DNA from: Mobula hypostoma
Taxonomy: Eukaryota
Direction of reading: 5' to 3'
Length of the DNA: 64,000 nucleotides
Assembly: GCF_963921235.1 (NCBI RefSeq)
Contig: NW_026948113.1
Location: 310,001-374,000 of the forward strand
Shown here: one piece after another, positions 30,606 through 56,900 of the stretch
Position numbering within the stretch: position 1 is the stretch's first letter
Layout: each line of letters opens with the position of its first letter
Position numbers and translations under genes: made by a program
Notes under the pieces: generated by a model
The model's database searches: none
Seen by the model: the letters and a program-made list of their open reading frames with translations, nothing else
What the model was told of the DNA's origin: nothing

Positions 30606-30667
30606 CTCAAGCAGAGTATATTCCACTGTCGTAGGTGGCTGGGATTATCCAGTATGGTCAGAGTGGA

Positions 30668-30818
30668 GCAACACACATCAAAGTTGTTGGTGAACGCAGC
30701 AGGCCAGGCAGCATCTTTAGGAAGAGGTACAGTCGACGTTTCAGGCCGAGACCCTTCACCAGCAACTTTGATGTGTGTTGCTTGAATTTCCAGCATCTGC
30801 AGAATTCCTCTTGTTTGC
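30668..30818. mobile_element. Short PLE-derived insertion with inverted ends and a 14-bp TSD
   Basis: 26-bp inverted arms at 30669-94 and 30755-80 (1 mismatch); flanks atggtcagagtgga (30654-67) and atggttagagtgga (30819-32). Confidence 0.62.
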
Positions 30819-31519
30819 ATGGTTAGAGTGGAATTTGTTTAGATGTCACTGTTAATAGGGGAAGTGCCCCTCATGTGGAGAGGGAAGCACTTCACGTCCT
30901 ACCATTTGCTGTCCGGCAAATACGGTGGGTTCTGGTTAATTAGGGAGAGAGGGAGGGAGGGATCTGCGCCTTGTAAGGCATGAAAATGCCCGACGCAGGC
31001 CTCAAGGTCTGAGTCGATGTTCCCTCCCTGGTTAATTAGACCACTGGTTAATTGGGACAGCCACATACATGAGACAACTCTTAAAAGACAAAAATGCGTT
31101 GAGAAAATAGCTGGGATTCCCTTCATTTATTTGTGACATATCAGAGGGGAAGAGAACCGAGTAAAAATTATGAATCACAAACCCTTCTTTCGGAACAGCC
31201 TCTCCCCTTTATTAGTGGTGCAGCTAATTAATTCAGTACAGAACATAGAGGAAATTTGCATCTTATTACTCATTAAGACTCATTATAACCCTGGGCTGTT
31301 ATACCTTAATCCTGAACTATCTTCCAAGCCTTGTCAGCATGTTACTGAACGTTAATAAAGTTCAAAAACAATCATAGGTCTTGGCAAAAGGTCTACAGTA
31401 TGTCTATTGTATCTCTGCCTCGCATAATTTCATACACTTCTGTCAGGCCGCCCCTCAACATCCGAGGCTCCAGAACAAAAAAAAACTGAACTAACCAGCA
31501 ACTGCCGCGCCTCTCTTGT

Positions 31520-31660
31520 TAGTTTCTATTTCTCAAACTGCAGGCGTCAAGACTGCCTGGTAACTGGTGATCAGACTTCCTTAAGCTTCTAATTGGCTGC
31601 CTGTATAGGAAAAGCTTAGTTTTTTTTAAACAGGCTTAGCACCGAGTACCCGGAAATGTA
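31520..31660 (+). promoter_or_regulatory. MHC class I proximal promoter: ISRE + X1/X2/Y module
   Basis: AGTTTCTATTTC (31521-32) fits the ISRE consensus AGTTTCNNTTTC. GCGTCA CRE half-site 31544-49; X1-like CCTGGTAACTGGTG 31556-69; X2-like TGATCA; Y box ATTGG 31592-96; ETS-like CCGGAA 31650-55. All lie just upstream of the leader ATG. Confidence 0.8.
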
Positions 31661-31751
31661 GCCGTAGAGTTGTGTGGATAAATCTGTCGGTTTTCATTTT
31701 ATTTTTTATATAATTTTATTCTGTGTTCCGGCCGAGCATTAAGTTTGGGGA

Positions 31752-31803
31752 ATGTTGCTGATACTCTGTGCCCTGTGTCTTTCCATTCGTCCGGTTTTCC
31801 CAG
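31752..31803 (+). CDS. MHC class I exon 1, signal peptide [17 protein letters not shown]
   Basis: ATG about 155 nt after the Y box; hydrophobic 17-aa leader; strong donor CAG|GTAAGT in phase 1, which completes GAG (E) with exon 2. Confidence 0.85.
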
Positions 31804-34800
31804 GTAAGTAGTGAATTCATCAACCCAGCCTCCACTGTCGTCCCGGGAGACACACTTCGTTGATAATTTTAGACTATGATTAGGGTTTGAAAGGGGTGAT
31901 ATTTAATCCTTGCTCGATAAAGGACTCCAGTGAAGGATTCCTGTGTAACTTCCCTGACTAACAATAAGGCGCATAATTACAGAACCGGGGAGGTCGTAAA
32001 CGGGGAACAGACAACATTAAAATGATCCGTTTTAAATTGATTTCGGAACTACAGGAATAGGGGTGATCTGCACTCCTCCAGTATGGCTGAGCTCTACTGT
32101 CGTTGAGCCATGGCCCATCAGACATGCAGCGCACAGTGTGCTCTTTGTGCCCCCTGTTGCCAAGGATTGTCCCTCTCTCTACTCTTTCCCGGAAGGGTGG
32201 AATCCCCCCGCCCCTCTAACTCCACAACTTTATGGAACTCCGTGTTTGGATCACTCCAGTCGATTTGCCTCAGGGCAAAATCATTAAAAAAAAACTGTGG
32301 CTTGAAGGACTTGGGGGTGGTGCATCTGGTGGCATTGCTGTTTCGCTGCGCCGTCGGCCCAGGCTCAACACTGACCTCCAGTGTTTGTACAGTTTTTATT
32401 TTATCAGCCGAATCCACCCAAGTTGTTGATTCTGTCCCAGATCTAATGTCTCAACCCCCTGATAATTTTTCTGCTTCCTTTGAAGTTCTTCTCGTCTGCT
32501 GACCTCCGTCAGATGTTCAAAGTTCAAAGTAAAATTTATTACTGTATCAGAGTACGTACATGGCACCACATACAACCCGGAGATTCTTTTTCTACGGGCA
32601 TACAGAGCAAATCTATAAAACTGTAACTCTAAACGGGATCAATGAACAACAAACTCTGCAAATACAAACATAAATAGATAGCAATAAATAACGAGCATGA
32701 AATAACAAGTTTAAGAATCCTTAAAGTGAGATCATCTGTTGTGGGAACAGCAGAGATAGAATGAGTGTAGTTATCCCCTTTTGTTCAAGAGTCTGATGAT
32801 TGAGGGGTAATAATGGTAGTAACTGTTCTGGAACTGGGTGGTGTCAGTCCTGAGGCATTTATACCTTCTACCTGATGGCAGCAGCTAGAAAAGAGCACGG
32901 CCTGGGTGGTGAGGATGATGTTGATAGAAGCAGCTTTTGTATGGCAATGTTTCATGATTGAGTGGGTTTTACTTTCAATGTAAAGGACCAAATCCACCTT
33001 TCGTAGATTTTCTGCTGAGAGGCATTGATGTTCCCACACCAGGCCATAATGCAGCCAGTCAGCACAATTTCCACCACACATCTATAGAAGTTTGCCAAGG
33101 TTTTTGATGACATGTTGAATCTTCGCAGACTCCTGAGGAAGTGCTTTCTTCGCAATAGTGATGGTTCCAGGACAGGTCCCCTGATATAGTGATTCACAGG
33201 AATTTAAAGTTACTGACCATCTTCACCTCTGGTCCTCCATGATTGCTGGCTCGTGGACCTCTGGTTTCCCTCTCCTGAAGTCCACAATCAGTGCCTTGGT
33301 ACTGTTGACATTGAGTGAGAGGTTGTTGTTATTATACCACTCAGCCAAATTTTCAATCTCCCTCCTTCATCACCAGCTTTGATACAGCCCACAATAGTGG
33401 TATCATCAGCAAACTTGTATATGGTATTGGAGCTATACCAAGATACAGTGGGAAACTTTGTTTTGTACGTTATCATTGTAGATAATTTCAAAACATAAGT
33501 ACATCAAAGTAGAACAAAGAGAAGAGGAATAAAATAACCTCCAGATTATAGTATTGCATTTTCAGAGAATAAGGTGCAAGTGCCATAACAAGGTAGGCTG
33601 TAAGGTTGATGGTTCAAATTTATTATACTACAGGTCTATTCAAGAGCTTTATGACAGCTGGACCAAAGCAGTCCTTAAAGCAGCTGGTTCCTGTTTTCAA
33701 GTTTTGGATCCTCTCCCAGTAGGAGTGGGGCGAACCAAAAATGACTTGGGTGCAAAGGGTTTGTTGTCTTCTTTCCTGAGGTAGGGGGAAATGTAGACAG
33801 AGTGTGTACTCAGCTCCCTGCAATTTAGAACATAGAACATTACGGGAGTAGATCCTGCGGCCTGCAATGTTGTGTGACATAATTAAATTGGCAATTAAAT
33901 GCCTTACTAAATTCATCCCTTCTGCCTTGCACATCTCTTTTGAATTTACCCTCACTCCCATCTTAGATGTATGCCCTCTAGTATTAGATGTTTTAACAGT
34001 AAAGATACTGGGTGCTTTCTGTATCTATGCCCCTCATAATTTTATCAGAATCAGGTTTAATATCACGGGCATATGTCATGAAATTTGTTGTTTTGCGGCA
34101 GCAATACATTGCAATACATAATAAAAGAACTAAAAATTACAATAGGAAGTATATAAATATAAAATAAAGTAGTGGAAGAAGTTAGGGAAGAATGACTGTG
34201 GTAGTGTTTGTGGGCTCATTGTCCATTCAGAAATCTGATGGCAGAGGAGAAGAAGCTGTTCTGGAAACACTGGGTGTGTGCCTTCAGGCTGCTGTACCTC
34301 ATCCTTGATGGTAGCCATGAGAAGAGGGCATGTGATGGGATAACGATGGATGCCGCCTTCTCGAGTCATCACTTTTTGAAGGTATTCTGGATACAGGGGA
34401 GGCTAGTGACCACAATGGAGCTGGCTGAGTTTACAACTTCCTGCAGCTTTTATCGATCCTGCGCAGTGGAGCCGCCGTACCAGATGATGAGGCAACAGGT
34501 TAGAATGCTCTCCATGGTACATCTGTAGAAATTTGTGAGTGTCTTTGTTGACATACCAATGCCATCATTAAACACGCCCATCACCCATGGCATGTCCTCT
34601 TCTCATTGTACAGAAGCCTGAAGGCACACACTCAATGATTGAGGAACAGCTTCTTCCCCTCTGTCATCCAATTTCTGAATGGATATTGAGCTCATGAACA
34701 CTATCTCACCACTTTTTTGTTTCTATTTTTGCACTACTTATTTAATATAACTATATACTGTATATATAAATTTGTGTTGTAGTCTGCAGCAAAGTTAACC

Positions 34801-38862: not shown

Positions 38863-38909
<47 letters not shown>

Positions 38910-41900
38910 CACTGGATGGCAAGGGGAGAACGTACAAACTCCTTACAGGCAGCAGTGGAAATTGAATTTGGGTTGCTGGTACTGTAAAAAGTTGTGTTAA
39001 CCACTATGCCGCCCCTGGATCGTCCAATCCAGCACATAAAGTCGCAAAATAACATGAGCACAATCCCTGAGTGCCAAGTGTGAAGACTGACAGGTTGGCA
39101 TGAATTGCGATGTGCATGTTTATGTAAGACATTATAATGTATAATGTTACTGTACCAGACAGTAATGCAGCTGCTTAGGACACTCTTGTTGGTGCTCCGG
39201 TAGAAGGTGGTGAAAATGGGGGGGTGAGGGGAAATGTGGGGAAAGTGGGGAGATAGGAGATTGCCAGTCATGTGCACTCCAAGAAACTTGGTGCTTCTGA
39301 CTCTCTCCGCAAAAAAGCCATTATGTGCAATATGAAGTTGTCAGCCTGCATCTTCTTGAAGTCCAACATTATCTCTTCAGTCTTGTCGACATTGAGATTT
39401 ATGTTGCTGTGTTTACACCTGTCCACAAGCTGCACTACCTCCTCCCTGCTGTTTCATCATTGCTGTTGATGAGGCCAACCACTGTTGCATTGTCAGCGAA
39501 TCTAATGACGCAGTTAGAATGGATTTGGCAATGCAGTTGTGTGTTAGTGTTATGAACAGCAGTAGGTTGAAAGTACAGCCCTAGGGGCGTGCTAGTGCTA
39601 TATGTGATGGGATCAGAGACGTTGCTGCCAATAGGGGCAGTGTGTGGTCTCTTCAGAGGAATGGAGCAGTGCAGACCAGCAGGTATAAGAGGAATAGGTA
39701 GAGTGGATAGCCAGCTCCACTTCCCCGGGCACCACTGCTCAATACAAGAGGACATGGCTTTAAGATAAGGGGTGGGAAGTTCAAGAGGGATATTAGAGGA
39801 AGTTTTTTTACTCAGAGAGTGGTTGGTGCGTGGAATGCACTGCCTGAGTCAGTGGTGGAGGCAAATACACTAGTGAAGTTTAAGAGACTACTAGACAGGT
39901 ATATGGAGGAATTTAAGGTGGGGGATTATATGGGAGGCAGGGTTTGAGGGTCGGCACAACATTGTGGGCTGAAGGGCCTGTACTGTGCTGTATTATTCTG
40001 TATGTTCTGTGTTCATCAGGGACATCAAGGTCCAGTTACAGAGGCAAGTATTGGGACCAAACATGGACAATTTTCCAACGAATATCTGGGGAATAATTGT
40101 ATTGAAAACAGTACTGACATCAATCAACAGCATTTTGACACAATTGACACTCTCAGAGAGAATGGATAATCTCTGGAATTCCCTATGCAGGGGAAGCTGA
40201 ATCATCTGGGATATTCAAAAAAAAAAGAAAGCAGGCAAATTTTGAAATGAGAGGTTCATAGATTCATAGAGGGCAGTAGCAGTCCCTTCAGACCATCACA
40301 AACATGCTAACTGTTGTGTCCTCATCTATAGTAGTTCTGTTTGCCAGTATTTAGTCCTTAGCCTTCTGTGCCTTTGCAATTCAAGTCAACTCAAATCAAG
40401 TTTATTGTGATGTGCACAAATACAGCGAGGTACACATACAGTGAAAAACTTGCTTGCAGCATCATCACAGGCTCACAATTGCAGAATATAATTTGTACAT
40501 ACAGATAAGTTATATGTAAGCTATATCATGGTGAATAGAAATGAAAAAATATGCAAAAAGGAGACATTATTCCAAAAAACAACACAATCAACAATAAAAC
40601 CAGGATAGTTCTAGAGGTGGTCTGCACTGCTCCATTGCTGAGGTAGATTGGTGTCGTGCAGGTCAGTTCAAGGACCTCTTGGTTGTAGGAAAGTATCTGA
40701 TCCTGAACCTGACGATGTAGGACTTCAGGCTTCTGTACCTCCTGCCCAGTGGCAAAACCCAGAGGAGGGCATGACCAAGATTGAAAAGATGCTGTTGATA
40801 GATGCCATCTTCTTGGGGCAGAACCTCCTGTAGATGCTGTCAGTGGAGGGGAGGGCTCTGTCCATTTTAGACCAAGCTATGTCCACTATTCCCTGCCATA
40901 TCTTGTATTCTTTTGCATTGGAATTGCCATACCAATCAAGAGGCCTCCAGTCAGAATACTTTATAGTACTTCTGTAGAAGTTTCTTCTCATTTTTGGTGC
41001 TATGGCAAATCTTAAGTTTCTCAGAAAGCAGAGATGTTGATGTACCTTTTTAATGATTTAATTTATGTGCCATGCCCATGAAATGTCACTGAGATGTTGG
41101 CAGTCAGGAATTTGAAGCTGATGACTCTCCACTCTCACCCACCCATGAGAACTAGCATGTTGTCTACTGAATTCAGACACTTTTATGTCTCTGAGATTAC
41201 CTATCTGCTCCTCAAAGTGTGTTTTACAAATTGCAATCAAAGTTCAAAAATTCAAAGTAAATTTATTATCAAAGCATGGCTATGTCACCATATACCACCC
41301 TGAGATTCACTTCCTTGCAGGCATTCACAGTAAAAGAAATACAATAATCAATGAAAAACTACACATATACAATTACAGACAAACAACTAATGTGTAAAAG
41401 AGACAAAATGTACAAATACAAAAGAAAAAAAGACAAATAATAATAATTAGCTGTGTACATACATCTATTGATGCTTCTGGACACATCTTTAGTGATGTTC
41501 CTGGAATCATCGGGTGTTTCGGGTCTTTCAACATCATACACCCTCCTCCAGGTGACCCAGCCGGGGCTGATCAGACAGCAGCTTGTGTCCAGATGGCTAG
41601 CTACTTATGACTCCATGGCTCCCCTCTTTTGAGCCACAGCCATCTTGAGGCCCTTTCTGCACCATCGGTGGTACTGTGGATGGCTCTCCTCTTCCTCTCT
41701 CTCTCGATGCCCAAAATGCTGAAGGCTCTAACTAAAGAACGGGCTATGAATCCCCTACAACCAACCTCCACTGGGAGACACCTCGCTCTCCATCCAGCCT
41801 GCTGACAGTTGCTGACCAGTCCTGCATACTTGGAGAGCTTCCTTTCAAAGGTCTCCTCCAAGCTATCTTCCCATGGAACTTCCCAGCAGCACCACTTGCT

Positions 41901-44900
41901 TAGTAGACTCAGACACTAGGACAATGTCTGGTCGCAGGGTGGTGGCTGCGATATGGTTGGGGAACTTCAGCTGCCCTTCGAGGTCCACCAACAGCTGCCA
42001 GTCCCTTGCAGAGGTCAGAATGCCTGCAGATGTTCTTTTGGCAGGTATTGGCTGATCCCCAGCTCTGACAAAGGCAATGGTCTGCTTGGAGGGTCGGGAC
42101 CTCTTCGCCCACTCAACTCCTGTGCTGACGGCTTCAGCGATGGTCTTCAGGAACTGATCATGCCACCACCTGTATCGTCCCTCACAAAGTGCCCTTGCAC
42201 AGCCGCTGAGGATGTGCTCCAGGGTTCCTCGCTTGGAGCACAGTGGGCACGCAGATGACTCTGCCTTGCCCCATGTGTGCAGGTTTGATGGGCTTGGAAG
42301 CACATCGTACACTGCCTGGATGAGAAATTGGATGCAGTGTGGTTCGGCTTTCCAAAGATCAGCCCAGGTCACTTTCCTCTCAACCGCATTCTCCCGTCTT
42401 GTCCAAGCTCCCTGTTGCTTCATTCCCACCGCCTTGCAGGCTCTCATCTCCTCCACTAAATAATACTGTGAAAACTAGATGTAGTCTTTGACAGTTAGTC
42501 CGTAGGTTATGGAATTGGTTCAGTGTTGAGGTAGTCTGATGGTTGAAGTGTAATAACTTCCTGAACCTCACCTTCTGGGTGAAAACATTTCCCTCAATCC
42601 CCTCTCAACTTCCTCTCTCCTTAAACCTACGCTGTCTACTTCAGATGTCTTTGTTATGGGGAAAAGGTTCTCATTATCTTCTCTATGTCTCTCATAATTT
42701 GACACACCTCTTTTGGATCCCTCCTCAACCTACTCTGCCTCGAGGAAAACAAACACAGTCTCTTCAGTCTTTCCTCATAAACCGAATATGCCATATTCTT
42801 TGTGCCCCTCCAGTGTGGTCACATGTATCCTGTAGTGCAATAATCAGAACTGTACGTGTTTCCCTTCCATCTGTCTGTTTTAGTGATTTTCTTCAAACAC
42901 TAAATTGAATATGTTCATTTTTTGAGCTTTGCACATCACTGATGACTAGCAGGGCAGGAGGTGAGGAAGGAGAATCGCCATGATATGTGACCTCATTATG
43001 AAGTTGCGGTTGTTTTGTATTTGGCAGAGACACACAAACTGCAATATTTTTACACCTCGATGACCGGAAATGTGGATTTTCCTGAGTTTGTACACGTTGG
43101 ACTTTTGGATGATGTCCAGATAACCTACTTTGACAACAGTATTATGGAGGACGTTTCAAGACAGCCGTGGATGGAGAGAGAACTGAATGGTGACTACTGG
43201 ACGAAGGAGACCCAGAGGCTAATCAATCGGCACAAGCTGTCCATGGCCAACCTCCAGATCGCAATTCAACGAACCAACAGAAGCATGACAGGTGCGTGCA
43301 TCATTATGCTTGTAAAGTGAATGGGCTTCACACTGTATGCAGACCCACATTGTTTTTATAGGAGCCATGTGTGAGGCTGATTGAAAATGTTCAGTCACTT
43401 CAGTTGAGATAGTAAATTGGATGTGACATTGGCTTCATTAGAGAAGCCAGAGGGTTGTAGTAGATGTTTGCCTCTCTGACTGGAGGCCTGTGACTAGAGG
43501 TGTGCTGCAAGGGTCAGTGTTCATCCATTGATTTTCATCTTTATTAATGATCTGGATGATGATGTGTTAAACTGGATCAGCAAATTTAAAGATGACCCCC
43601 AAGATTGGGAGCATAATGGACAGTGAGAAAGCCTATCAAAGCTTATGCAGGATTTGGACCAGCCGTGGTGCGGGTGGAGGGGTGGGAGGAAAGGCTGAAA
43701 AGTGACAGATAAATTTAATGTAGACAAATGCAAGGTGTTGCACTTTGAGAGAACTAGGGTAGGACATACAGTACACAGTGTAGGGCACTGATAAGTGCAG
43801 TAGTACAGAGGGATTGTTAATACGTATCCATAATTCCCTGAACGTGGTGTTACAGGTAGAAAAGGTCATAAAGAGAGATTTTGGCATATTAGATTTCATA
43901 AATCCAAGTATTGGGAACAGGAGTGGGATGTTATTTGAAGTTGTATAGGAAATTGGTGAGGTCAAATTTGGGGTGTTGTGTGCAGTTCTGGTCACCTCCT
44001 GTACCTACAAGAAAGATATTGATAATGTTGAAAGAGTGCAGAGAAAACTTATAAGGATGTTGTCGGGACTTGAGGACTTAAGTCATAAGAAACTGTTGAG
44101 CAGGTTAGGACTTTATTCCCTGGACCATAGGAGTATGAGCAGAGATTTGATAGAAATATACAAAATTATGAGTATTATAGATTGGGTACATATAAGCAGT
44201 GTTCTTCCATTGAGGTCGGGTGAGACTAGAACTAGATATCATAGGCTAAAGGTGAGAGATGAAGTACTCAGGTGAACATGGGTGGCTGCGAATGTGGAAT
44301 GATCAGGTTTGTTTTCAACATCAGAGAAGTTTAGATGAACACCTGGATGGCATGGTTATGGAGGGCTATGGTGCAGGCGTAGGTGCAGGTCGATGCGGCT
44401 ATGCAGAACAATAGTTTGGCATAGACTAGGTGGGCCAAAGGGTGTTTTTCTGTGCTGTAGTGTTCAATGGGAGCGGACCACTATATTGGGAAAGCAACCC
44501 AATGGTGTATTGGAGAGAGGACAGTGACATGAAAATGGCGGGAAATGGTAAGTGGACAGGCACAATGGGTGTGCAATCCAGGCTACGTAATGGTGAGCAG
44601 ATGGTAATATTGGGAATGTAATGAATAGGAATGATGTCTGACTCAGAACGAGGAATGGCTGTGACTGCAAAGTTAGGACTAATGGGAGGGCAGTGATGAA
44701 TTGACGTCTGTGTTGGAGGTAATGAGTGGATAATGATCAGTGATAGCTATGTATATGTGTAATGAGTGTGTAATGGTGAGCGGATCGGTGTGTAGAACTG
44801 TAATGAGTATGTAATAGTGAGTGGATGGCTGTGTGGGAGTGTATAGGTGGGTAATGATGAGTGATTGCAATCTGGGTGTTTAAAGGGTGGGTAGAAGTGA

Positions 44901-47900
44901 GTAGATGGCTGTATTCAAGTGTAATGGGTGGGTAATGGCTGGGTGGGACTGTTGTGAGTGGATGCCATATGAAAATATAATAATGAGTGGATGGTTGTAT
45001 GAGAGTGAAAAGTGTGGGTAATGGTGAGTGATGGCCATGTGAGGATGTAATACGTTGGTAATAATGTGTATATGGCCATATGGCAATGTCATGGTGTAAC
45101 AGTGAGTGGATGGCTGTGGGAGTGTAATGGTGAGTAGATGGCAGAGTGGGAGTGTAATGGTGAGTAGATGGCTGTGTGGGAGGGTAATGAGTGTGCAATA
45201 AGTGGTTATTGGACATTGAGTGTGTAATGGGGAACAATGGTGAATGGAGATCCATGCCCCTGGGTTCCACATTATCGTACGAGATGCAGGTGTGACCTGA
45301 GGCCAGGTTTTGATTTCTTCTCCTTCTCCAGGGCTGAACTACCTGCAGTACACATCAAGCTGCCAGCTGAATGACGACCAAACGGTAAGCGGGGTCCGCC
45401 AGTTCGCCTTCAACGGCCAAGACCTAATCAGCTTTGACCTTGAGCATGCCACCTGGGTCACCACCTCTCCCATCGCGATCACCACGAAGGACAAGTGGAA
45501 CAGTGACAACAGCAACAATCTCTACAAAAAGCATTACACAGAGAACATCTGTGCCGAGTGGCTCAAGAAATATCTTGAGTACGGAGCCCAGACACTGTCT
45601 CGCAAAGGTAGGTCAGGCTAAACATCTGCCATTCAACATCTGATCAGTTCCCTGCCAGCCATGTCCTCCTGCACGTTTCACGTTGCCCCCACTAATTCCA
45701 TGGTGTTAGTTTGAACTGGAACCAATAGCACGAGTCATGAGGAAATGCAGCAGGACTTTGTTTTTTAGGATCAGAATTAGGATCGGGTTCATTATCGCTG
45801 TTATACACTAGGTGACCACTTAATTAGTGTAAGGAAAGAGTTAAAAGTGATTCCACCCAAACCACACCATGTGGCACCAACAATTCCAGTCACAGTCACT
45901 AAGATCATTTCTTTCCCGTTACGATGTTTTGTCTGAACAACTGAACCTCTTGACCATGTCTGCATGCTTTTGCTGTCACATGATTGGCTAATTAGATCTT
46001 TGCATTAATGAGCAGGTGTACAAGTGTACCTAATAATGTAGCCACTGTGTGTAATTTGTTGTTTTGTTACAGCAGTGCAGTGGGACACATAAAAAGTTAT
46101 TATACATGAGGAATGAACTGAATAAACAGAGCAAAAAGACAATTAGTGAGATGTTCATTGGTTCATGAACTTTTCAGCAGTCTGATGGCAGAGGAGATGA
46201 ACCTGTTCTTAAAACAGGAAGGTCTGCAGGTATGATTGAAATATGGAACCCTTAGACACCTACTTCCACCTATCCTGCTGGTGAATGTATGATCTCTGGA
46301 AAATAAAATGAAGACCTCACAGCAAAATTGCGGTACCAGAGGGACATCAGGGTCTTCTGTGTACTTTGCTTCATGGAAATATGGTTCATCCTACCTGTGG
46401 GCTTCACTATTCACCACAAGGACAGAATAGCTGAGACTTTTCATTGTGCTGCACAAACATGGCAGTCTTGTCTCAAACCTGCTCACCCAACATGGAACAT
46501 CTAGTGGTCAAGTTTTGTACGTTTTAGTTATGAGGGTGTTTTCTGCTGTCATCCTGGTAGTGGTACACATTCAGCCTCTGGTTGTGTCACCGTCTGATAT
46601 GGTGGAGCCATTGCACAGGATCAGCAAATCGAGCCAGCTGCAGCAGGGGCACTAGCCTGCCCAGCATCAAGGACATCTTCAAAGCACAATGCCTCAAAAA
46701 GCTGGCATCTATCAAAAAGGACCCCATCACCCAGGACATGCCCTCTTCTCATTGCTACTATCGTGGAGGCGGTACAGCAGCCTGAAGACACACACTTAAA
46801 TGTTTCAGGAACAGATTCTTCCCCTCTGCCATCAGATTTCTGAATGGACAATGACCCATGTACACTCTCTTATTATATTTCTTCCCTTTTTTTGGCTCTC
46901 TTTTTGACCACTTATTTAATCTAACTTTTTATATATATTTATTATTGTAATTTATAGTTTGTGTTTACTATATATTGCATTGTACTGCTGCCACAATGAC
47001 AAATTCCACAACATATATGCCAGTGATATAAAACCTGATTCTGAATGCACTGTCAGACCTGATTGGAGTTGTGGAGATCCACGGCTCTAGAAACAAGGGA
47101 GGGTCTATGACACGTCATCAGTGTTCATTTATTCTGTGAGTAAATTACAAGAGAGTTGTGGAGGCTTTGGAGAGGGTGCAGAACAGGTTCACCAGGACAC
47201 TGTCGGATTGGAGTACAAGAGCTATAAGAAGGGTTTGGATAAACTAGGGCTGTTTTCTCTGGATTATCAAAGGCTGAAGGGAGACCTGACAGAAGTTTCT
47301 AAAATTACCACAGACATCTTATCCCCGGGCATGCCTCTCTGTTGCCATGTGCCTGCTGCACGGAAGCTTCTCAATGCACCGGCGCATACATGTCTTTGTC
47401 TACATGACAGTAAACTCAACTTCAACTTTGACTTTGAGGTATTTAAGGTGAGAGGGGTAAAGGGCAAGATGGTAGTAGATGCCTGGAACGGGCTGCCAGT
47501 GGTGGAAGCAGATAAAGGTCTGGTGTTTAAAAGGCCGTGAGAGAAATGAATATGCAGGGAACGTCGGGATGTGGATCGTATATTCAGTGCAGATATTGTT
47601 GGCCAAAGGACCTGATCCCGTACTGTACTGTTCTACAAGTATGATTCTGAATACATGCTGCTTGGAAAGTATTAGGTGGTGTAGTTCACAAAATAAGATC
47701 TATCTTCAATCATTACAAGTGCTTTCCTATTGGCCAACTTTGATGTAAGTTATTATTAAGCATGCAATAAATTATCCATAAATCCCTACTGCAAAGAAGC
47801 AGGCCATTCAGCCCAACATGCCTGTGCTGGCTCTATGAGTGAGATATCCAATTAGTTACGCTCTTTTTCCACGGACTGCAATTTTTTTGTTACTTGGTGG

Positions 47901-50900
47901 CGTAAATCTTGGTCTAACAATCAAGTTGAGCAACAGTGAGATCTGGTGAGTGGTCACCATTGGCAGATCTTATGAGATCCATTTGTAACTGTATTGGTTG
48001 ATGTCTCCTTTCCAACTACAGCACTGTTTGTATCCTTTCCATCGCTTTGTTGATGATCAAGAGTGGACTAATGGAGTAGTAACTGGTTGGCTTTGTTTGG
48101 CCCTGCTTTGGAGAACAGGAGGCTCCTGGGAATGATCCATTTTGTTTGATGGCTCTGGGTATGTTCTCACTGGAGTTTCGAAGAATGAGGGGAAATCTCA
48201 TTGAAACCTGTCTAATATTGAAAGGCCCAGATAGAGAGGACGTGGAAAGATGTTTCCTATAGTGGGCAAGTCCAGGGCCAGAGGGCACAGACTTAGAATA
48301 CAAGGATGCACCTCCAGATTAGAAGAAGGATGAGGAGGAACTTCTTTTGGGGGAATTCATTGCCGCAAACAGATGTATAGCCAAGACATTCAGTATACTT
48401 AAAGTGCTGCTGGTTCTTGATTAGTAAGGGTTTCAAAGGTTATAGCGAGACAGTAAGAGAATGGGGGTAATAAATCAGCCATGATGGAATGGTGGAGCGG
48501 ACTCAATAGGCTAATTCTGCTAATATGTCTTATGGTCTTACAGTCGTATTGTTGGGTAGATACCAGTGATGTTAGCTGGACTGGAACAACTTGGCCAAGG
48601 ACACGACAAGTTCTGGAGACGCAGGTCTTCAGTACTGCTGTTGAAGTGTCATCCGGGCACACAGCATTTGCTATATCGTCATATTAGTTAATGGTTTATG
48701 TCTGGTTATAGCACCATTTCACAATATATTGTAAGATCATGCACATTACAACAAGTGGTGCTGATGGTTGCTGAACCTATCTGTAAATATTTGGCAGCTT
48801 TTGCTTAGGCAGTGACTGTGTTGCCTGTAATCTAGCTAGTCATTGGTGAAAACCTGACTGTGGGACCAGGCCTCATAACCTTGGCTGGAGTATACTTGAA
48901 CAGGTACACCTACTTTTTAATACAAACATCTAATCAGCCAATCATGTGGCAGGAACTCAATACATAAAAGCATAGAGACATGGTCAAAACACTTAGTTGT
49001 TGTTCAGACCAAATATCAGAATGCGAAATAAATGTGATCTAAGTAACTTTGACCATGGAATGATTGTTGGTGCCAGATGAGGTGCTCATCTTCTAGGATA
49101 TTCATGCACAACAGTCTCTAGAATTTACTGAGAATCATGCAAAAAAACAAAAAAAACTAATTCCAGTGAGAAGCAGTTCTGTGGGCAAACACACCTCGTT
49201 AATAAGAGAGGAGAATGGCCCAACTGGTTAAAGCTGACAAGAAGGTGTCAGTAACTCAAATAACTGCATGTTACGACTTAGCGTGCAGAACAGCATCCTG
49301 AATGCACAGCACATCAAAGTTAGAAATGGACGAACTGCAGCAGCAGAAGACCCCACTGGGTTCCACTCCTATGGACACTTTATTAGGAACACTTCTTTAC
49401 CTGTTAAATTGGCCATTGAGTATAGAAAAGCTATTTTATTCTCCCCATGTTCCTATCAATTATCTCCATCCTTCACCACAACCCTGATTCTATCGCTCGT
49501 GTAATTACTGAGGGCAATTCACAGTGGATAATATAGATGACTTTCCCACCAGTATGCATGACTTTGGGATGTAGGAGAAAACCAGAGCAACCAGGAAAAT
49601 TCCCCAAACCCACACGGTCACAGTGAGCACATGCAAACTCCATAAACACAGTGTTGGAGGTCAGGAGCAAACCAGTTCTCAGCGGCTCTTGTCAGCTCTG
49701 TTCCTGTCTGTCTCTCTCGCTCCCTCTCAATCACTCGCTCTCTATTGCTTTCTCTCTCCCTCTCAATTGCTTGCTCACACTCTGTATCACTTGCGTTCTC
49801 TCTCTTTTGTGGTCTCTTTCTCTCTCTACCACTCTTTAATGCTCTCCCTGTCTTTCCAATGCTCTCTATCAATCTCTCACTCTCAATCACTCCCTTTCTT
49901 GATCACCTCGCCCCCTCTCACTCGATTGCTTTCTTGCCCTCTCTTGATTGCTCCCTATCATGCCCACTCCCTCTCTGGCATTGTTTCCCCCTCCCCCTCC
50001 CTCTCCCACTCTCCCGCACGTGCACACTCCCACGCACACACACTCACACACTCCCACACTCCCACACTCATACTCCTACACTCCCACACTCTCACACTCC
50101 CACGCTCCCACACTCTCACACTCACGCTCCACACTCTCACACTCACACTCACTCAGCACTTACAGTACATCGGGCCAAAGGACCTGTCTCCAAGCTGTGT
50201 ATCTCTAACACTAACTGTCTTCTCCCACAGCTGTCCCAGATGTGATGGTCTACTCCAAGATGACTCCAGATGGGGAAGGCCTCATTCTCCATTGCCTGAC
50301 CACTGGCTTTTACCCACAGGCCATCACTGTGACCTGGCTCAGGGATGGCCAACCTCTTCCCCCACATGCAAACTCTAGCATTTTACCCAACCACAACAAC
50401 ACCTACCAGATAAAGGTGTCCTTGCTGTTAGAGCCTACGGAGAGACGGCAACATGTCTGTCATGTGCAGCACAGCAGCAGGCCGGAAGGAGTGGATTTCA
50501 CCTGGGGTAAGACATGGATGAGTAATGAGTAAATCATGGGGTGAAAGGGTGGAGAAGGTATTGTGGGGTGTGTGGGTGTAAGATATCAGTATTTGTATTG
50601 GTTTATCATTGTCATGTAGAATCATAGAGCATTACAGGGCAGAAGCAGGCCATTCAGCCCTGCTTGTCCATGCCAGCCTACTCTTCTGCCTAGTCCTATC
50701 TACCTGCACCCCCCAGATCATGGCCTTCCATATTCATCCATCCATATACCTATCTAAATTTCTCTCACATGTTACAATTGAGCGTCCATCTAACACTTCC
50801 ACTCGCAGCTCGTTCCACATTCGCCCCATCCTCAGAGTGAAGAAGTTCCCCCTCTGATTCCCAGTACACGTACCAAAATATAGTGAAAACCACTCAGTTT

Positions 50901-53900
50901 GTGTGCCCTTCAGAAAGATCATTCTATACATAAGCACATCAAGGTGGTTAAAAGAAAATAATGTTGAATATAGAGTTACAGTAACATAGAAAGTGCAGTG
51001 CAGATAGCCAATACGATGCAACGGCAATGTTGATGTAGATTGCGAGGTCAAGATTTCGTCTGCAAGCATAAAAGAGGACTACTTTTCAGGGATCTGATAG
51101 AAGCTATTCTTGATCCTGGTCACATATGCTCTCAGGCTTTTATATCTTCTGCTCAGTGGGAGGATGGATAACAGAAAATATCTTGGGTTGGGGGGGTGGA
51201 GAAGAGAAAACTGACTGGTGGGGGATGGGTCCTTGCTTATGTTGCCCGCTTTCCTGAGGCAGCGAAAAGTGTGGCAGAGTCAATGGAATTGAGGCTGGGC
51301 TCTATTCACATCTTTTGCAGTTTCTTGTGGTCTTGGGTAGCCAATTGCCAAAACAAGCTGTGATGTATCCAGATATGGTGCATCAATTAAAAATTGGTGA
51401 GGATCAATGGGGACAGGCTGAATTTCCATGGTCTCTGAGATGCTTATTTTTTTTTTCATAAGCGTTGCTTCCTCAGAATTTTTTTTGTTTATGCTTGAAG
51501 CTGAACACAAATACAATTTCAGACTACTTGTATCACAGAGGAATTTGGAGAAACTGGAAATTAACTTTTATTGAATATAATGTGTTAAATTGCATCATGG
51601 TGCTGTCACTTTGCAGTAGTTCAATTTGCTGATGATTTTCATCTGATCTCAGTGTCTGAGACTTTGAGTTAAGTGTCCAGCAATAATCAGCCAGCACTGA
51701 TGGATTCCAGTTCCCTGATACGACTTCTCCATGTCCACAATGTCCTATTGAAGCCTTTCAACACGCTCCTCACTAACAGTGCCAAGATTTGCTGGGAAGA
51801 AGTCTAAATGGGAATGCAGGAAGTGAACCTTTAGTGACATGTTGCACTTCATGGTTTCATCTGCTTGGGATATCTTGATAACCAGCTGCGCGTAGTTTGG
51901 TGCTCTGTAGTTCCCAAGAAAAATTTCAACAACATTCTTGAATGACTTCCATGCGATTTCCTCCATTTCCACTGAAGTTCTTTAAATTTCCTGTCATTGG
52001 TGACCTGTTTGATTTGTGGGCCAACAGAAATTCCTTCCTTAATCTGGGCCTTAGTTATTCTGACTTGGATTATGAATTGAAATAACCAATATGGGCAATC
52101 TCAAAAAAATGGTGCGTGATAGGGAAATTTCATGGTGATTTTCATAATTAGCAGCCTGAAATCCATAAGATACACCCAAAAGTATTCAGGAAGCAAAATC
52201 TTTGTTGTCCAGTGTTATTTATTTATTATTATTAATGTTTTTGTTTTATTTTCTTTGTCCACTTTGTGTGCAGATTTTCATTGATTCAATTATGTTTCTC
52301 TGTACATACTGTGAATGTGTACAAGAAAATGAATCTCAGGGTGGTATATGGTGACATATATGATTTTAATAATAAATTTGCTTTGAACTTTTTAAAACTT
52401 TGAGATGCAGAGGCACTGGTGTGCTTTCTCGGCTGTGGTGGTAGAGTACCTGGACCTGGCCAGATTGTTGGAGACATTTGCACTGAGGAATTTGAAGCTC
52501 TCAACCATCTGCCAGGAGTTTTCAAGTGCCAAGACCACAGCCATACTGAGACTGGGTAGTTTTTGATAGAGTTGAATGGATATATTTATTCAATACCCTT
52601 GAGAAATTTAATTTTAGTCCGATATTCATTTCCTGGCCCTTTGGCCTCGGTATTTACTAACAATCAAAGATCCCCTTTTTTTCACTTATTCTGTGGTACT
52701 AGGCAGGGTTGCCCTCTTAGTCCACTACTATTTGATATTGCCTTGGAACCGCTAGCTATTGCCATTCGTTCCTCTCCTAATATATTTGGTATTACCCGTG
52801 GAAATGAGACTCATAACTTATCACTATATGCAGATGATCTACTATTACATATTTCTAACCCAGGAAAATCTATTCCAGCAGTATTAACTTTGCTTGCTCA
52901 GTTTAGTAGTTTTTCTGGTTATAAACAGAACCTAGGTAAGTGTGAACTCCTTCCATTAAATATGCAGGTTCCCATTTATAGAAACTGTCTATTTAGAGTG
53001 ATTACTAACTATTTTACTTATTTGGGAGATAAAATTACTAAGAGACATAAGGATCTATTCAATTTCAACCTTTTACCATTAATTAATCAGGTTAAACAAC
53101 TGATTACTAAATGGTCCCCTTTGTCTCCATCACTGATTGGCCGTATTAATGCTATTAAAATGATTATTTTATCCAAATTTTTATATTTATTTCAAGCGAT
53201 ACCGATTTTTATTCCTAAATCTTTTTTTGATACTATTGACTTTAAAATTTCCTCTTATATATGGCAAACTAGAAATCCCAGATTAAGTAAAAAATACTTA
53301 CAGAAATCTAAGAAAGAGGGTGGTTTGGCATTGCCTATCCTAAGATTTTACCACTGGGCAATTAATATCCGATACTTAATATTTTGGACACAAGATTAGA
53401 ATATAACTCCACGCCCATATTGGTTAAACCTTGAAGGCCATTCTGTACAAGGGTTTTCTTTAGCTTCCATTTTAGGAACTTCGCTGCCTTTTGCACTATC
53501 TAAATTGAATAAACAAATTTTCAACCCTATAGTTAAACAAACATTGTGAATATGGTTTCAATTTCGTAAATTTTTTGGCCTGAATGAATTTATGTTATCA
53601 AGCCCTATTATATCTAGTTTCTTTTTCCAACCCTCGGTAATGGACCAAGCCTTTCTGATATGGAAGACGAAAGGTATAATATGTTTTCGTGATCTATTTC
53701 TGGATAACTGCTTTACATCTTTTGAGCAGTTATCTGAGAAATTTGATTTGCCTAGATCCCATTTTTTTAAATACCTACAAATAAGAAATTTTTAAAATAC
53801 CACGTTGCCTACCTTTCCGACTTCAAATCATTCTGGCATTCTTGATAAAATTTTAGGTTTTAATCCTTTGCAGAAGGGATTAATAGCAATAATTTATGAT

Positions 53901-56900
53901 ATAATTATTAAATTACAGCCAGATATATCTGATAAAATCAAAAATGAATGGGAAAGGGAGCTTCAACTTTCCCTACCTATAGAGAAATTGGAAAAAAATT
54001 TTCAATTAGTTAGTACTTTTTCTATATGTGCTAAACATACATTAATACAATTTAAAGTAGTACTCAGAGCTCATATGTCCAAAGATAAACTAGCTCATTT
54101 TTATTCCCACAGAGCCCTACTTGTGATAGATGTCACTCTGAAGTGGCTACTTTAACTCATATGTTTTGGTCCTGTCCTCTTTTGGAAAAATATTGGAAAG
54201 ACATTTTTGATATTATTTCAACAGTTCTAAGGTTCGATTTAAAACCCCATCCTATTACGGCAATCTTTGGATTGCCAATGGTAGAACATAGATCTTTGTC
54301 TTCTTCAGCCTGTCGAATGATAGCTTTTGTTACTTTAATGGTGAGAAAATATATTTTGTTGAACTGGAAGGAAACTAACCCTCCAACTACATTCCAATGG
54401 TTTTCTCAAACCATATTAAGTTTAAATTTAGAAAAAATTAGAAGTGATATTTTTGACCCTTCGGTTAAATTTGAAGAAACTTGGAAACCTTTTATGCAAC
54501 ATTTTCATATGAGGTAATCTGACCTTTCCGAATCTTTTTTCTAAACTTAAATTATATGAGAGGAGCGGAGTTGAAGACATTATTGAACATGTCTGATACA
54601 AGCTGTTGGTCTAGCCCTGTTTTGCTTTTTTTGGGTTATTTTTCTCTTTTTCTTTTGGGTTTTTTTTTGTTTATATATATTTTTTTCTTTTTATTTCTTT
54701 TTTAATGATTAATCTCATTATGAGTTTGAAAGTCTTTTATATCTATGATACTTAAAATTCATTTTATATATGCTGATGAACATTATCCTAATCTCTTTGT
54801 ACCAACTTTGTTATTGAGTTTATAATTTTGAAAAATTAATGAAAAGATTTAAAAAGAAAGAAAAGAGACTGGGTAGTAAGGTCAGGGGTCAGGTATGTGT
54901 GGGCAGGTATGGAGATCGGGATGGTAGGTTGCTTCTCCTTATGACCTGTTCGAAGATGTCCCTGAACTGCTAGATAACAGGCTCGCAAGGGAAGGCACAG
55001 TGGTACTGATGATGGTGCTGCTTCCCAACAGCACCAGATGTATCACAGTCTATCATAGACAAAGCCCTTTCCACCATTGAGCACATCTACAAGGAGAGCT
55101 TCCACAAGAAAGCAGAATCTATCATCAAGGACCCCCCCTCCACCCCCCTCCTCCCTTCAGGTCATGTTCTCTTCTCACTGCTACCATTGGGGAGGAGGTA
55201 TAGGAGCTATTGGTCCCAAACCAACAGGAACAGGATCAGTTATTCCCTACACCATCAGGCTATTCAACCAGCATGGTCAACTTCAATCACCTGAACTCTG
55301 AACTATTTCTACAACCTATGGTCTCACTTCCAAGGACTGTAGAGCTCATGTTCTCGTTACTCTTTACTTGCTTTTTTTATTTTTACCGTTGCCTTCTTTT
55401 GCACATTGGCTGTTCGCCACTCTTTGTGTGTAGCTTTTCATTGACTGTACTGTATTTCTATGTTTTACTGTGAATGCCTGTAGGAAATTGTATCTCAATG
55501 TAGTATATGGTGTCTCTAGGTAGAATATGTATACTCTGATAATAAATTTACTTTGGACTTTCACTCAAACCTGTCCTCACAGTCTGTGCAGAGAGGCACT
55601 GGCCAGAATGTCCTTCCTTTGACCTGATATGGAATGGGCTTAATCCACGCTGCAATTATTCTACTATTTGTAAGGAATAGGGGGAGCCTTGTGTAAGGCA
55701 TGGGAAAAGTGCAGGTGGACTGATGCTCACTGCACAGTGATCTGGTAACAATTCTCTCCTTGCTTCATTAGAGCCAGACAGTGGAGTAAATATATGGCTG
55801 ATTATCCTCTTCCTGCTGGTAGTTATCAGTGCTGTGGGAGCTGTTTGCATCTGGCTGAAGCACAGAAAAGGACTGATAAAATGCATCTGCTCAAGCAGAG
55901 GTAAGACTGAGTGGTGTACTTCAGTTTTCATGCCAAGCTCATGAATGGGTCACTCACAGTTGCATGGTTTGATTCACCCGAAGCACCTTTTGGCCTATGT
56001 GCTGAGATGTCAGCAGTGAAATTGTAGGCTGCAGAACTCAACAGAGATCAGGCAGAGATGATGATCAGTAGTCTATCACGAGGGACAGGCCATTCATTCT
56101 CCAAATCCCGACTAACCATCAAGCACTCTCTTATTTCCTTGTCTAGCAGCACATCCTCATTTTCTTTACAAAAATAAATTTATTTCAAGAACCACAATGC
56201 TACAACTCTGCAACAAAACACTAAGCAACAACAATTGATGAAGACCAATTAAATTAAAATATTCATATCCTCGTCTAGGATGCAATGTATGCCCTGTGGG
56301 GACATATGTTTCTGGACTAACTATATGGTGCCCGTGGGCATTGCATCTTATTTCTGCATGGATACCTGGGTGTGAATGTACCCCTGGTGGATTGCCAGGC
56401 AGTCAGCCCGGATGGAGCCCTCATCTACCTGCCTTCAGGATCCTGTGATATTTAACTTTGCCACCCCAAGGAACCAGTTAACCAGGCATCCTCTTCCTGT
56501 CCCATGTCCCCCTGCACTAGCTGACCAAATACAAAGAGGATGGAGCTTAAATCCAACCAGAAGGCGAGGAGAAGCTCCCTCAGATATGTGAATTGGGACT
56601 GCAGCCACACACAGTCTGTGTGCATGTGGACATTGTGCCTTCCAGCCCAAAGAAGCAACAAGTGGCTGGGAGATCTGTGTACAGTCTTATAAACTTATTG
56701 CAAGAAAGTGTTGTGCAGCATTCCTCCTTCTCCCCATCCGGGGGCCCTGTGCTGGCTCTTGCTCTCCATCCTGTCTGACGGCCCGGTGCTCCCTCTGGCC
56801 CCTGTCCAGTGGCCCAGCGTTCCCTCTCGTCCCTGTCCAGTGGCCTGGTGCTGGCTCTCACCCCTGTCCAACGGCCCAGCCTCCCTTATCCTCTGACCAT

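Follow-up and report, generated by a model that had tools for sequence, protein, structure and literature searches.

A conserved S-X-Y module with an adjoining ISRE in the predicted promoter of a non-classical MHC class I gene of the devil ray Mobula hypostoma

Within the 64,000-nucleotide stretch of Mobula hypostoma DNA analysed here (the window), positions 31505-31750 most likely serve a non-classical class I gene, intact and MHC-linked, as its proximal promoter, equipped with a genuine S-X-Y module and an ISRE. We place the probability of this reading, which includes transcription that is probably interferon-inducible, at about 0.8. The finding itself is real and conserved, and it is confirmatory, being expected rather than surprising. 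The motifs, their rarity, their conservation and their geometry are observations, from which we infer factor binding, the transcription start and inducibility.

An ISRE combined with an SXY module is the textbook arrangement for mammalian class I genes, whose promoters (mouse H2-K, human HLA-A and HLA-B) carry enhancer A, the ISRE, S, X1, X2 (site alpha), Y (enhancer B), CCAAT and TATA. A first-pass annotation of the ray DNA had proposed an ISRE followed by X1-X2-Y boxes, in the mammalian order and spacing, upstream of a leader exon. Reading the sequence from 30700 to 32500 bears this out and puts these elements approximately 160-230 nt upstream of the ATG of a class I leader, and every motif in that annotation is present on the plus strand at the position given. 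The S-X-Y module itself lies 146-217 nt upstream of the leader start codon. The upstream region contains the following features:

31113-31121, the kappaB-like palindrome GGGATTCCC, a 9-mer listed in the first-pass annotation
31381-31492, a multi-copy repeat with many matches in the skate and sawfish loci, forming the 5' boundary of the conserved promoter
31521-31534, plus strand, the ISRE AGTTTCTATTTCTC (reverse complement GAGAAATAGAAACT), oriented like its counterpart in mouse H2-K
31535-31548, plus strand, the S-position element, with AAACTG and the bases G and GTC invariant in four batoids
31544-31549, plus strand, GCGTCA, as read in the sequence
31551-31567, plus strand, the X1 box, a near-palindromic RFX site CTGCC-T-GGTAAC-TGG with its half-site GGTAAC at 31559-31564
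31556-31569, plus strand, X1-like CCTGGTAACTGGTG, the X1 limits of the first-pass annotation
31568-31574, plus strand, the X2 position TGATCAG, weakly CRE/bZIP-like, with TGATCA at 31568-31573
31589-31606, plus strand, the Y box, an inverted CCAAT (CTAATTGGCTGC) with ATTGG at 31592-31596
31677-31682, plus strand, GATAAA, a candidate TATA-like box 75 nt before the ATG
31707-31713, plus strand, a canonical TATATAA, found in this species only

Such a combination is rare by chance. The ISRE pattern AGTTTCNNTTTCNC occurs once in the window against an expectation of 0.04, and a strict X-Y pattern (CC-Y-R-G-Y-AAC, 25-29 nt, ATTGG) also occurs once, at 31556, against an expectation of 0.01 per 64 kb on both strands. 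A composite of ISRE, X and Y appeared in 0 of 200 shuffles. The same strict X-Y pattern is found once per locus in three other batoids, at the orthologous place and approximately 200-220 nt before the ATG. The possibility that the promoter lies inside a repeat was rejected, as the repeated parts are only 30666-30817 and 31381-31492.

The X1 box was compared with the RFX consensus GTNRCC(N0-3)RGYAAC and is of the RFX type, with GGTAAC preceded by CTGCC-T. Its similarity to HLA-DRA, given in the first-pass annotation as 10 of 14 positions, is correct when checked against the DRA X-box probe in PMC4806502 (CCTAGCAACAGATG). The comparison made there of 36 nt with about 37 nt in HLA-DRA, for the distance from the start of X1 to the start of ATTGG, correctly expresses the mammalian-like geometry described below. 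The invariant ray core GTAACTGGTGA resembles GCAACTGATGA of the mouse class II gene H2-Eb, and overall the ray X1 resembles the class II boxes no less than the class I box.

The gene served by this putative promoter is read on the same strand, with the other class I exons located 11-26 kb downstream of the leader exon:

31752-31803, plus strand, the leader (signal-peptide) exon, with its ATG at 31752, phase 1, donor GTAAGT, encoding 17 protein letters
43028-43291, plus strand, the alpha1 exon
45332-45607, plus strand, the alpha2 exon
50231-50506, plus strand, the alpha3 (C1-set Ig) exon
55772-55900, plus strand, the connecting peptide and transmembrane exon
57898-57981 (start approximate), plus strand, the last coding exon, placed by tblastn with residues 354-380 of the sawfish protein and by translation, and ending ...GEKGKMLV before the stop

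Any small cytoplasmic exons that lie between 55900 and 57898 are left out of this model. Phase 1 holds for each of the four junctions checked (leader to transmembrane exon), the five borders read carry AG/GT, and the gene is open and intact as far as the stop codon. The window contains no other class I gene, and tblastn matched a single leader in it. Ortholog leaders, which start MLLILCVLCLSIRWVCA in sawfish and MLLILFSISLCFSWVSP in sharks, are homologous to the window leader, so the exon at 31752 is the true leader despite an intron 1 of 11.2 kb.

The encoded protein is 75% identical to its sawfish counterpart, 61% to those of skates, 53-57% to shark orthologs and 43% to that of Callorhinchus. 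Identity is 56% with the nurse-shark 'nonclassical MHC class I antigen' (accession QGX07421) and drops to approximately 30% with two further class I proteins of the whale shark, of which at least one is non-classical. A search with the alpha2 exon and its follow-up define an orthologous group that comprises QGX07421, one gene each in several sharks, the sawfish and the skates, and the Callorhinchus gene. The non-classical type that the first-pass annotation had attributed to the gene is supported. The window gene is the ray ortholog of QGX07421 and is most likely a member of the UDA lineage, a name taken from Almeida et al. 2020. Its conservation at low copy number across sharks, rays and chimaeras is consistent with this lineage, which has been described as single-copy and MHC-linked (PMC10751288).

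Orthologous loci from Pristis pectinata (sawfish), the skates Leucoraja erinacea and Amblyraja radiata, Callorhinchus milii and Rhincodon typus (whale shark, the sole shark ortholog whose promoter was read) were compared with the window. In sensitive BLAST searches, similarity to the skates starts at 31522, at the ISRE, and stops just past the leader exon. Similarity to the sawfish starts at 31433, and upstream of this position no alignment was obtained even with that species. When the window is aligned with sawfish and the two skates, X1-X2-Y is the best-conserved non-coding sequence. Specifically, pairwise identities between the window and the three other batoids are 83-92% for X1/X2 and 78-89% for the Y block, compared with 27-43% for the X-Y spacer and 40-56% for the regions on either side of the module; the leader exon is 69-73% identical. 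Thus X1/X2 and Y match the coding leader in conservation, whereas identity in the X-Y spacer and flanks is close to random.

The blocks that are invariant in the four-batoid alignment are AAACTG, G-GTC, CTGCC, GTAACTGGTGA, CAG and ATTGGC-GC-TG-AT. The half-site GGTAAC is the same in all four batoids and reads AGTAAC in the whale shark, and ATTGG is invariant in the five elasmobranch orthologs. The cross-species comparison proposed in the first-pass annotation therefore places the X and Y boxes far above their flanks in batoids and finds them recognisable in the whale shark. Judging from these alignments, X, Y and the S-position element are under clear purifying selection across batoids. The pattern is the one described for mammalian class II genes, in which the boxes and the distances between them are kept and the sequence in between varies freely (PMC4381081).

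The ray module also reproduces the mammalian S-X-Y geometry within one base. The RFX half-site (in the window, GGTAAC starting at 31559) served as the reference, with distances counted from its first base; those for mouse are hand counts on the reporter primers in PMC4374748:

Window: AAACTG at -24, ATTGG at +33
Sawfish: AAACTG at -24, ATTGG at +32
Leucoraja and Amblyraja: AAACTG at -24, ATTGG at +34
Mouse H2-K: AACCTG at -24, ATTGG at +34
Mouse H2-Eb: GACCTG at -24, ATTGG at +33

From its position and sequence we infer that AAACTG, an element without an entry in the first-pass annotation, is the S box; this comparison was made after the invariant hexamer had been seen, and is suggestive rather than a formal test. 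Fixed X-Y spacing around a free spacer holds in batoids (32-34 nt), and the whale shark deviates from it.

The whale-shark UDA promoter has the order GTTTCGCTTTCC, AAACTG, CCCAGTAACTGG, a 135-nt element, CCCAGTAACTGATGACGAG and CTAATTGG. The 135-nt insert is a multi-copy, MITE-like repeat that landed inside the whale-shark X1; the bases at its end (…CCCAG) restore the left portion of the X1 copy on the proximal side. The X1 box reads CCCAGTAACTGATGA, and the ISRE, AAACTG, X1, a TGACG X2 and ATTGG follow one another in the ray order. Without the insert, the S-X distance is 20 nt and the X-Y distance 26 nt, both shorter than in rays. A profile built from the module of four batoids returned the two pieces of the whale-shark UDA promoter as its best non-self matches in approximately 340 kb.

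A second whale-shark class Ib gene carries CCTGGTAAC, an ATTGG 24 nt downstream of the half-site, a CCAAT and a GATAAA, and the ISRE is absent from its promoter. The occurrence of the module on this gene shows that it is common to several elasmobranch class I lineages, and X-Y distances of 26 and 24 nt in the whale shark indicate that the spacing is not uniform in sharks. This gene had been considered as a classical comparison and was rejected when it proved to be non-classical. For batoid classical class I genes, no ray sequence was obtained in a protein search that used a class I protein of the whale shark as its seed. In Callorhinchus, no X or Y box was found in the 900 nt upstream of the ortholog, which comprise a CT-rich microsatellite and approximately 170 nt of unique sequence and are uninformative; TTTCACTTTC was discounted because it sits inside a low-complexity tract.

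Not every element proposed in the first-pass annotation belongs to this conserved promoter. TGATCA is indeed present at the X2 position, and that position is conserved (TGATCA in the window and sawfish, TGAGCA in skates, TGACGA in the whale shark), but as a CRE the sequence is weak and far from consensus; a CRE half-site is found at this position in the whale shark alone. The human XY boxes likewise have X2 as their least conserved element (PMC4381081). The extra GCGTCA, which had been put forward as a further element, is a CRE half-site in this species only. The corresponding sequence is GTGTCA in sawfish and GAGTCT in skates, such that only G-GTC is kept in batoids, within the S-position block.

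The kappaB-like site fares no better as a promoter part. In mammals enhancer A abuts the ISRE; the ray site is located approximately 400 nt upstream of the ISRE, past the multi-copy repeat, and at chance level. The 9-mer is expected 0.35 times per 64 kb and was present in 30% of shuffles. Specifically, GGGATTCCC fits 9 of the 10 positions of GGGRNNYYCC, being one base off on either strand, and it is absent within 1.2 kb in all five orthologous promoters, with a different 9-mer at -992 in Amblyraja. No conserved GGGRNNYYCC-type site was found directly upstream of the ISRE, the place of an enhancer A. With the kappaB site and the extra GCGTCA set aside and X2 weak, the earlier description of a 'full classical-type' regulatory logic was overstated.

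Nearer to the gene, the window promoter lacks a forward CCAAT, which in sawfish and skates stands 22-23 nt beyond Y, an arrangement also known from mammalian class I promoters. GATAAA is common to both skates (-82 and -73) and to two whale-shark class I promoters (-108 and -112), and the GATAAA at 31677-31682 is our best candidate for the TATA-like element; the predicted transcription start is placed from it. The reading frames of the RefSeq models begin 33 nt upstream of the leader ATG in sawfish and 27 nt upstream of it in the whale shark, which indicates that transcripts in these species reach at least that far. Separately, the 5' part of a shark transcript contig looks chimeric, and the contig gave no usable 5' UTR.

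The ISRE differs from the S-X-Y module in its history. On the minus strand of 31521-31534, GAGAAATAGAAACT is a perfect match to the 14-nt consensus RNGAAANNGAAACT. The element directly abuts the S element, as in mouse H2-K, and the distance from its start to the half-site is 38 nt in the window, compared with 40 nt in the whale shark and 42 nt in mouse H2-K. In the other batoids, the ISRE region is 53-64% identical to the window, which is the level of the flanks. TTTCNNTTTC was not found within 450 nt upstream in sawfish or either skate; the skates have GGTTTCTTGTTTT at this place, with three mismatches to the 10 specified positions, and the sawfish retains one GAAA core. Constraint on the ISRE thus appears clearly weaker than on S-X-Y. 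The whale-shark UDA promoter carries GTTTCGCTTTCC, a perfect TTTCNNTTTC, 40 nt before the distal RFX half-site. As the whale shark is an outgroup to the rays and the distance is nearly equal, this points to ancestral presence and later loss, and an ancestral ISRE that decayed in some ray lineages would be the simplest history.

A perfect ISRE directly 5' of S is expected to attract factors of the IRF or ISGF3 type, which makes interferon-inducible transcription probable in this species; such inducibility of the predicted promoter is plausible from the sequence. The same data can be read otherwise, with S-X-Y real and the ISRE young or weakly constrained, expression mainly constitutive or tissue-specific, and inducibility not conserved in the lineage. 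This would agree with the flank-level identity of the ISRE region and with the missing TTTCNNTTTC in sawfish and skates. It agrees poorly with a perfect 14-nt consensus where 0.04 are expected, with the H2-K-like contact between ISRE and S, and with the whale-shark element at 40 versus 38 nt from X1, and we regard it as unlikely, if still deserving of some weight. A different objection concerns the proteins that occupy X1. The block might be an ordinary RFX and NF-Y promoter for the ubiquitous RFX1-3/7, rather than an MHC enhanceosome that recruits NLRC5 or CIITA. Indeed, GCTGCC-N-GGTAAC in sawfish and skates fits the general palindromic X-box of ciliary and other RFX targets, and the sequence singles out no particular RFX protein. 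We consider this improbable given that the site precedes an MHC class I gene and that S at -24 and the inverted CCAAT at +33 match H2-K and H2-Eb within 1 nt, since in mammals it is this geometry, not the RFX site alone, that sets regulated MHC genes apart from other places where RFX, CREB and NF-Y co-occur (PMC4381081, PMC4374748).

It is more improbable still that the leader exon and its upstream sequence are a relic, with another first exon in use or the gene silent. What prompts the thought is the 11.2-kb, repeat-filled intron 1. Against it, the exon is the sole leader in the window by tblastn, its phase agrees with alpha1 and its donor with the consensus; no break occurs in the gene before the stop codon; and the RefSeq models of sawfish, skates and whale shark take the homologous exon as the first coding exon. 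X and Y at 80-90% identity across ray orders are also unlike a relic.

The preferred reading, in which an S-X-Y module and an ISRE control this class Ib gene, can be put in mechanistic terms. Class II S-X-Y modules, such as those of mouse H2-Eb and human HLA-DRA, are bound by RFX5/RFXAP/RFXANK, CREB and NF-Y and recruit CIITA. By analogy, an RFX5-type complex, a CREB/ATF-type factor and NF-Y would bind the ray module cooperatively on one helix face, and the assembled factors would recruit an NLR transactivator, either NLRC5 or CIITA. Orthologs of both CIITA and NLRC5 have been reported in the whale shark (PMC8455134). The choice between NLRC5 and CIITA is made by the S box in mammals (PMC4374748); the ray S box is not assignable to either type from its sequence.

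Comparison with known systems shows what is shared and what is not. Like mammalian class I promoters, the ray promoter has ISRE, S, X1, X2 and Y in this order, on the same strand and before the leader exon, with AA(C/A)CTG at -24 and ATTGG at +33 or +34. Unlike them, it lacks a kappaB enhancer A beside the ISRE and a forward CCAAT, has TGATCA rather than TGACGCG at X2 and a longer distance from Y to the start codon, and belongs to a non-classical gene. Its geometry of -24 and +33 is identical to that of the class II gene H2-Eb, whereas the ray module serves a class I gene and is itself immediately preceded by an ISRE. The UBA promoters of rainbow trout and Atlantic salmon have been reported to carry an ISRE, a W/S box, a site alpha or X2 (TGACGC or TGAGGCA) and an enhancer B (PMC1971071), and the module was thus already known outside tetrapods. 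These, however, are classical genes of bony fish, and the ray gene represents a non-classical lineage in a cartilaginous fish. No description of a cartilaginous-fish class I promoter was found in the literature searched, a limited paper collection.

We tentatively suggest, at odds somewhat short of even, that S at -24 and Y at +33 had become fixed in the ancestor shared by rays and mammals and have been held within 1 bp for more than 400 million years on an equally old non-classical class I lineage, with the ISRE kept in devil ray and whale shark and lost in sawfish and skates. If this is true, interferon control of a conserved class Ib molecule differs between living elasmobranchs. The ISRE, present in two lineages and missing from two others, offers a natural experiment on the interferon inducibility of UDA, and 31521-31606 is a short, sharply bounded element suited to functional tests in ray or shark cells. 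More broadly, the S-X-Y platform is not confined to classical presenting genes, as it is also found, with mouse-like spacing, on an ancient class Ib gene. This supports the view that the system of RFX, NF-Y and NLR transactivators arose together with the MHC.

In the promoter of the probable UDA gene of the whale shark Rhincodon typus, the X1 box is interrupted by a 135-nt MITE-like multi-copy repeat (L006:9677-9811), flanked by a target-site duplication of approximately 8 nt (TAACTGGT / TAACTGAT). The insertion has moved the ISRE, the S-position motif and the distal X1 copy 145 nt upstream, and the proximal X1 copy owes its left half to the terminal ...CCCAG of the inserted repeat. The promoter of a second whale-shark class Ib gene, P0188 (L007:9755-9900), contains CCTGGTAAC, ATTGG, CCAAT and GATAAA and carries neither an ISRE nor AAACTG; X and Y are spaced 24 nt apart in it, 9 nt closer than in rays and mouse.

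Downstream of the Y box, the sawfish and both skates (L002, L003 and L004) have a forward CCAAT box 22-23 nt past Y, whereas this box is missing from the window species at 31607-31625, where GCTTAGTTTT is found instead. Between Y and GATAAA, the window holds an ETS-like CGGAAAT (31651-31657) that has no counterpart at the equivalent place in the skates or sawfish; two whale-shark class I promoters carry AGGAAAT and CGGAAAT at this place.

Immediately 5′ of the leader exon in the ortholog from the chimaera Callorhinchus milii lies approximately 900 nt of CT/CA-rich, microsatellite-like sequence (L005:9100-9830). The promoter of this ortholog is either very short or situated beyond the tract.

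Two pieces of multi-copy interspersed repeat are present in the window:

window:30666-30817, repeat piece with an internal 28-nt inverted repeat
window:31381-31492, repeat piece

Both have numerous copies in the window sequence and in those of skate and sawfish. Within the window gene, intron 1 carries a (CA)n/(TG)n tract near 38880-38950, and the intron that separates the alpha3 exon from the transmembrane exon holds long open frames containing reverse-transcriptase-like sequence of LINE type (52560-54520).

Three separate class I genes of the whale shark have their leader exons at these positions:

L006:10028-10078, leader exon
L006:2735-2685, minus strand, leader exon
L007:10001-10042, leader exon

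These exons are near-identical (MLLILFSISLCFSW, MLLILYFISLCFSW and MLLIIFSISLCFSW), as are, almost, the 14 nt preceding the ATG (GTGGATTCCCAGA), while the remainder of the three proteins shares only about 30-40% identity. Exon 1 is either under unusual constraint or has been homogenised between lineages.
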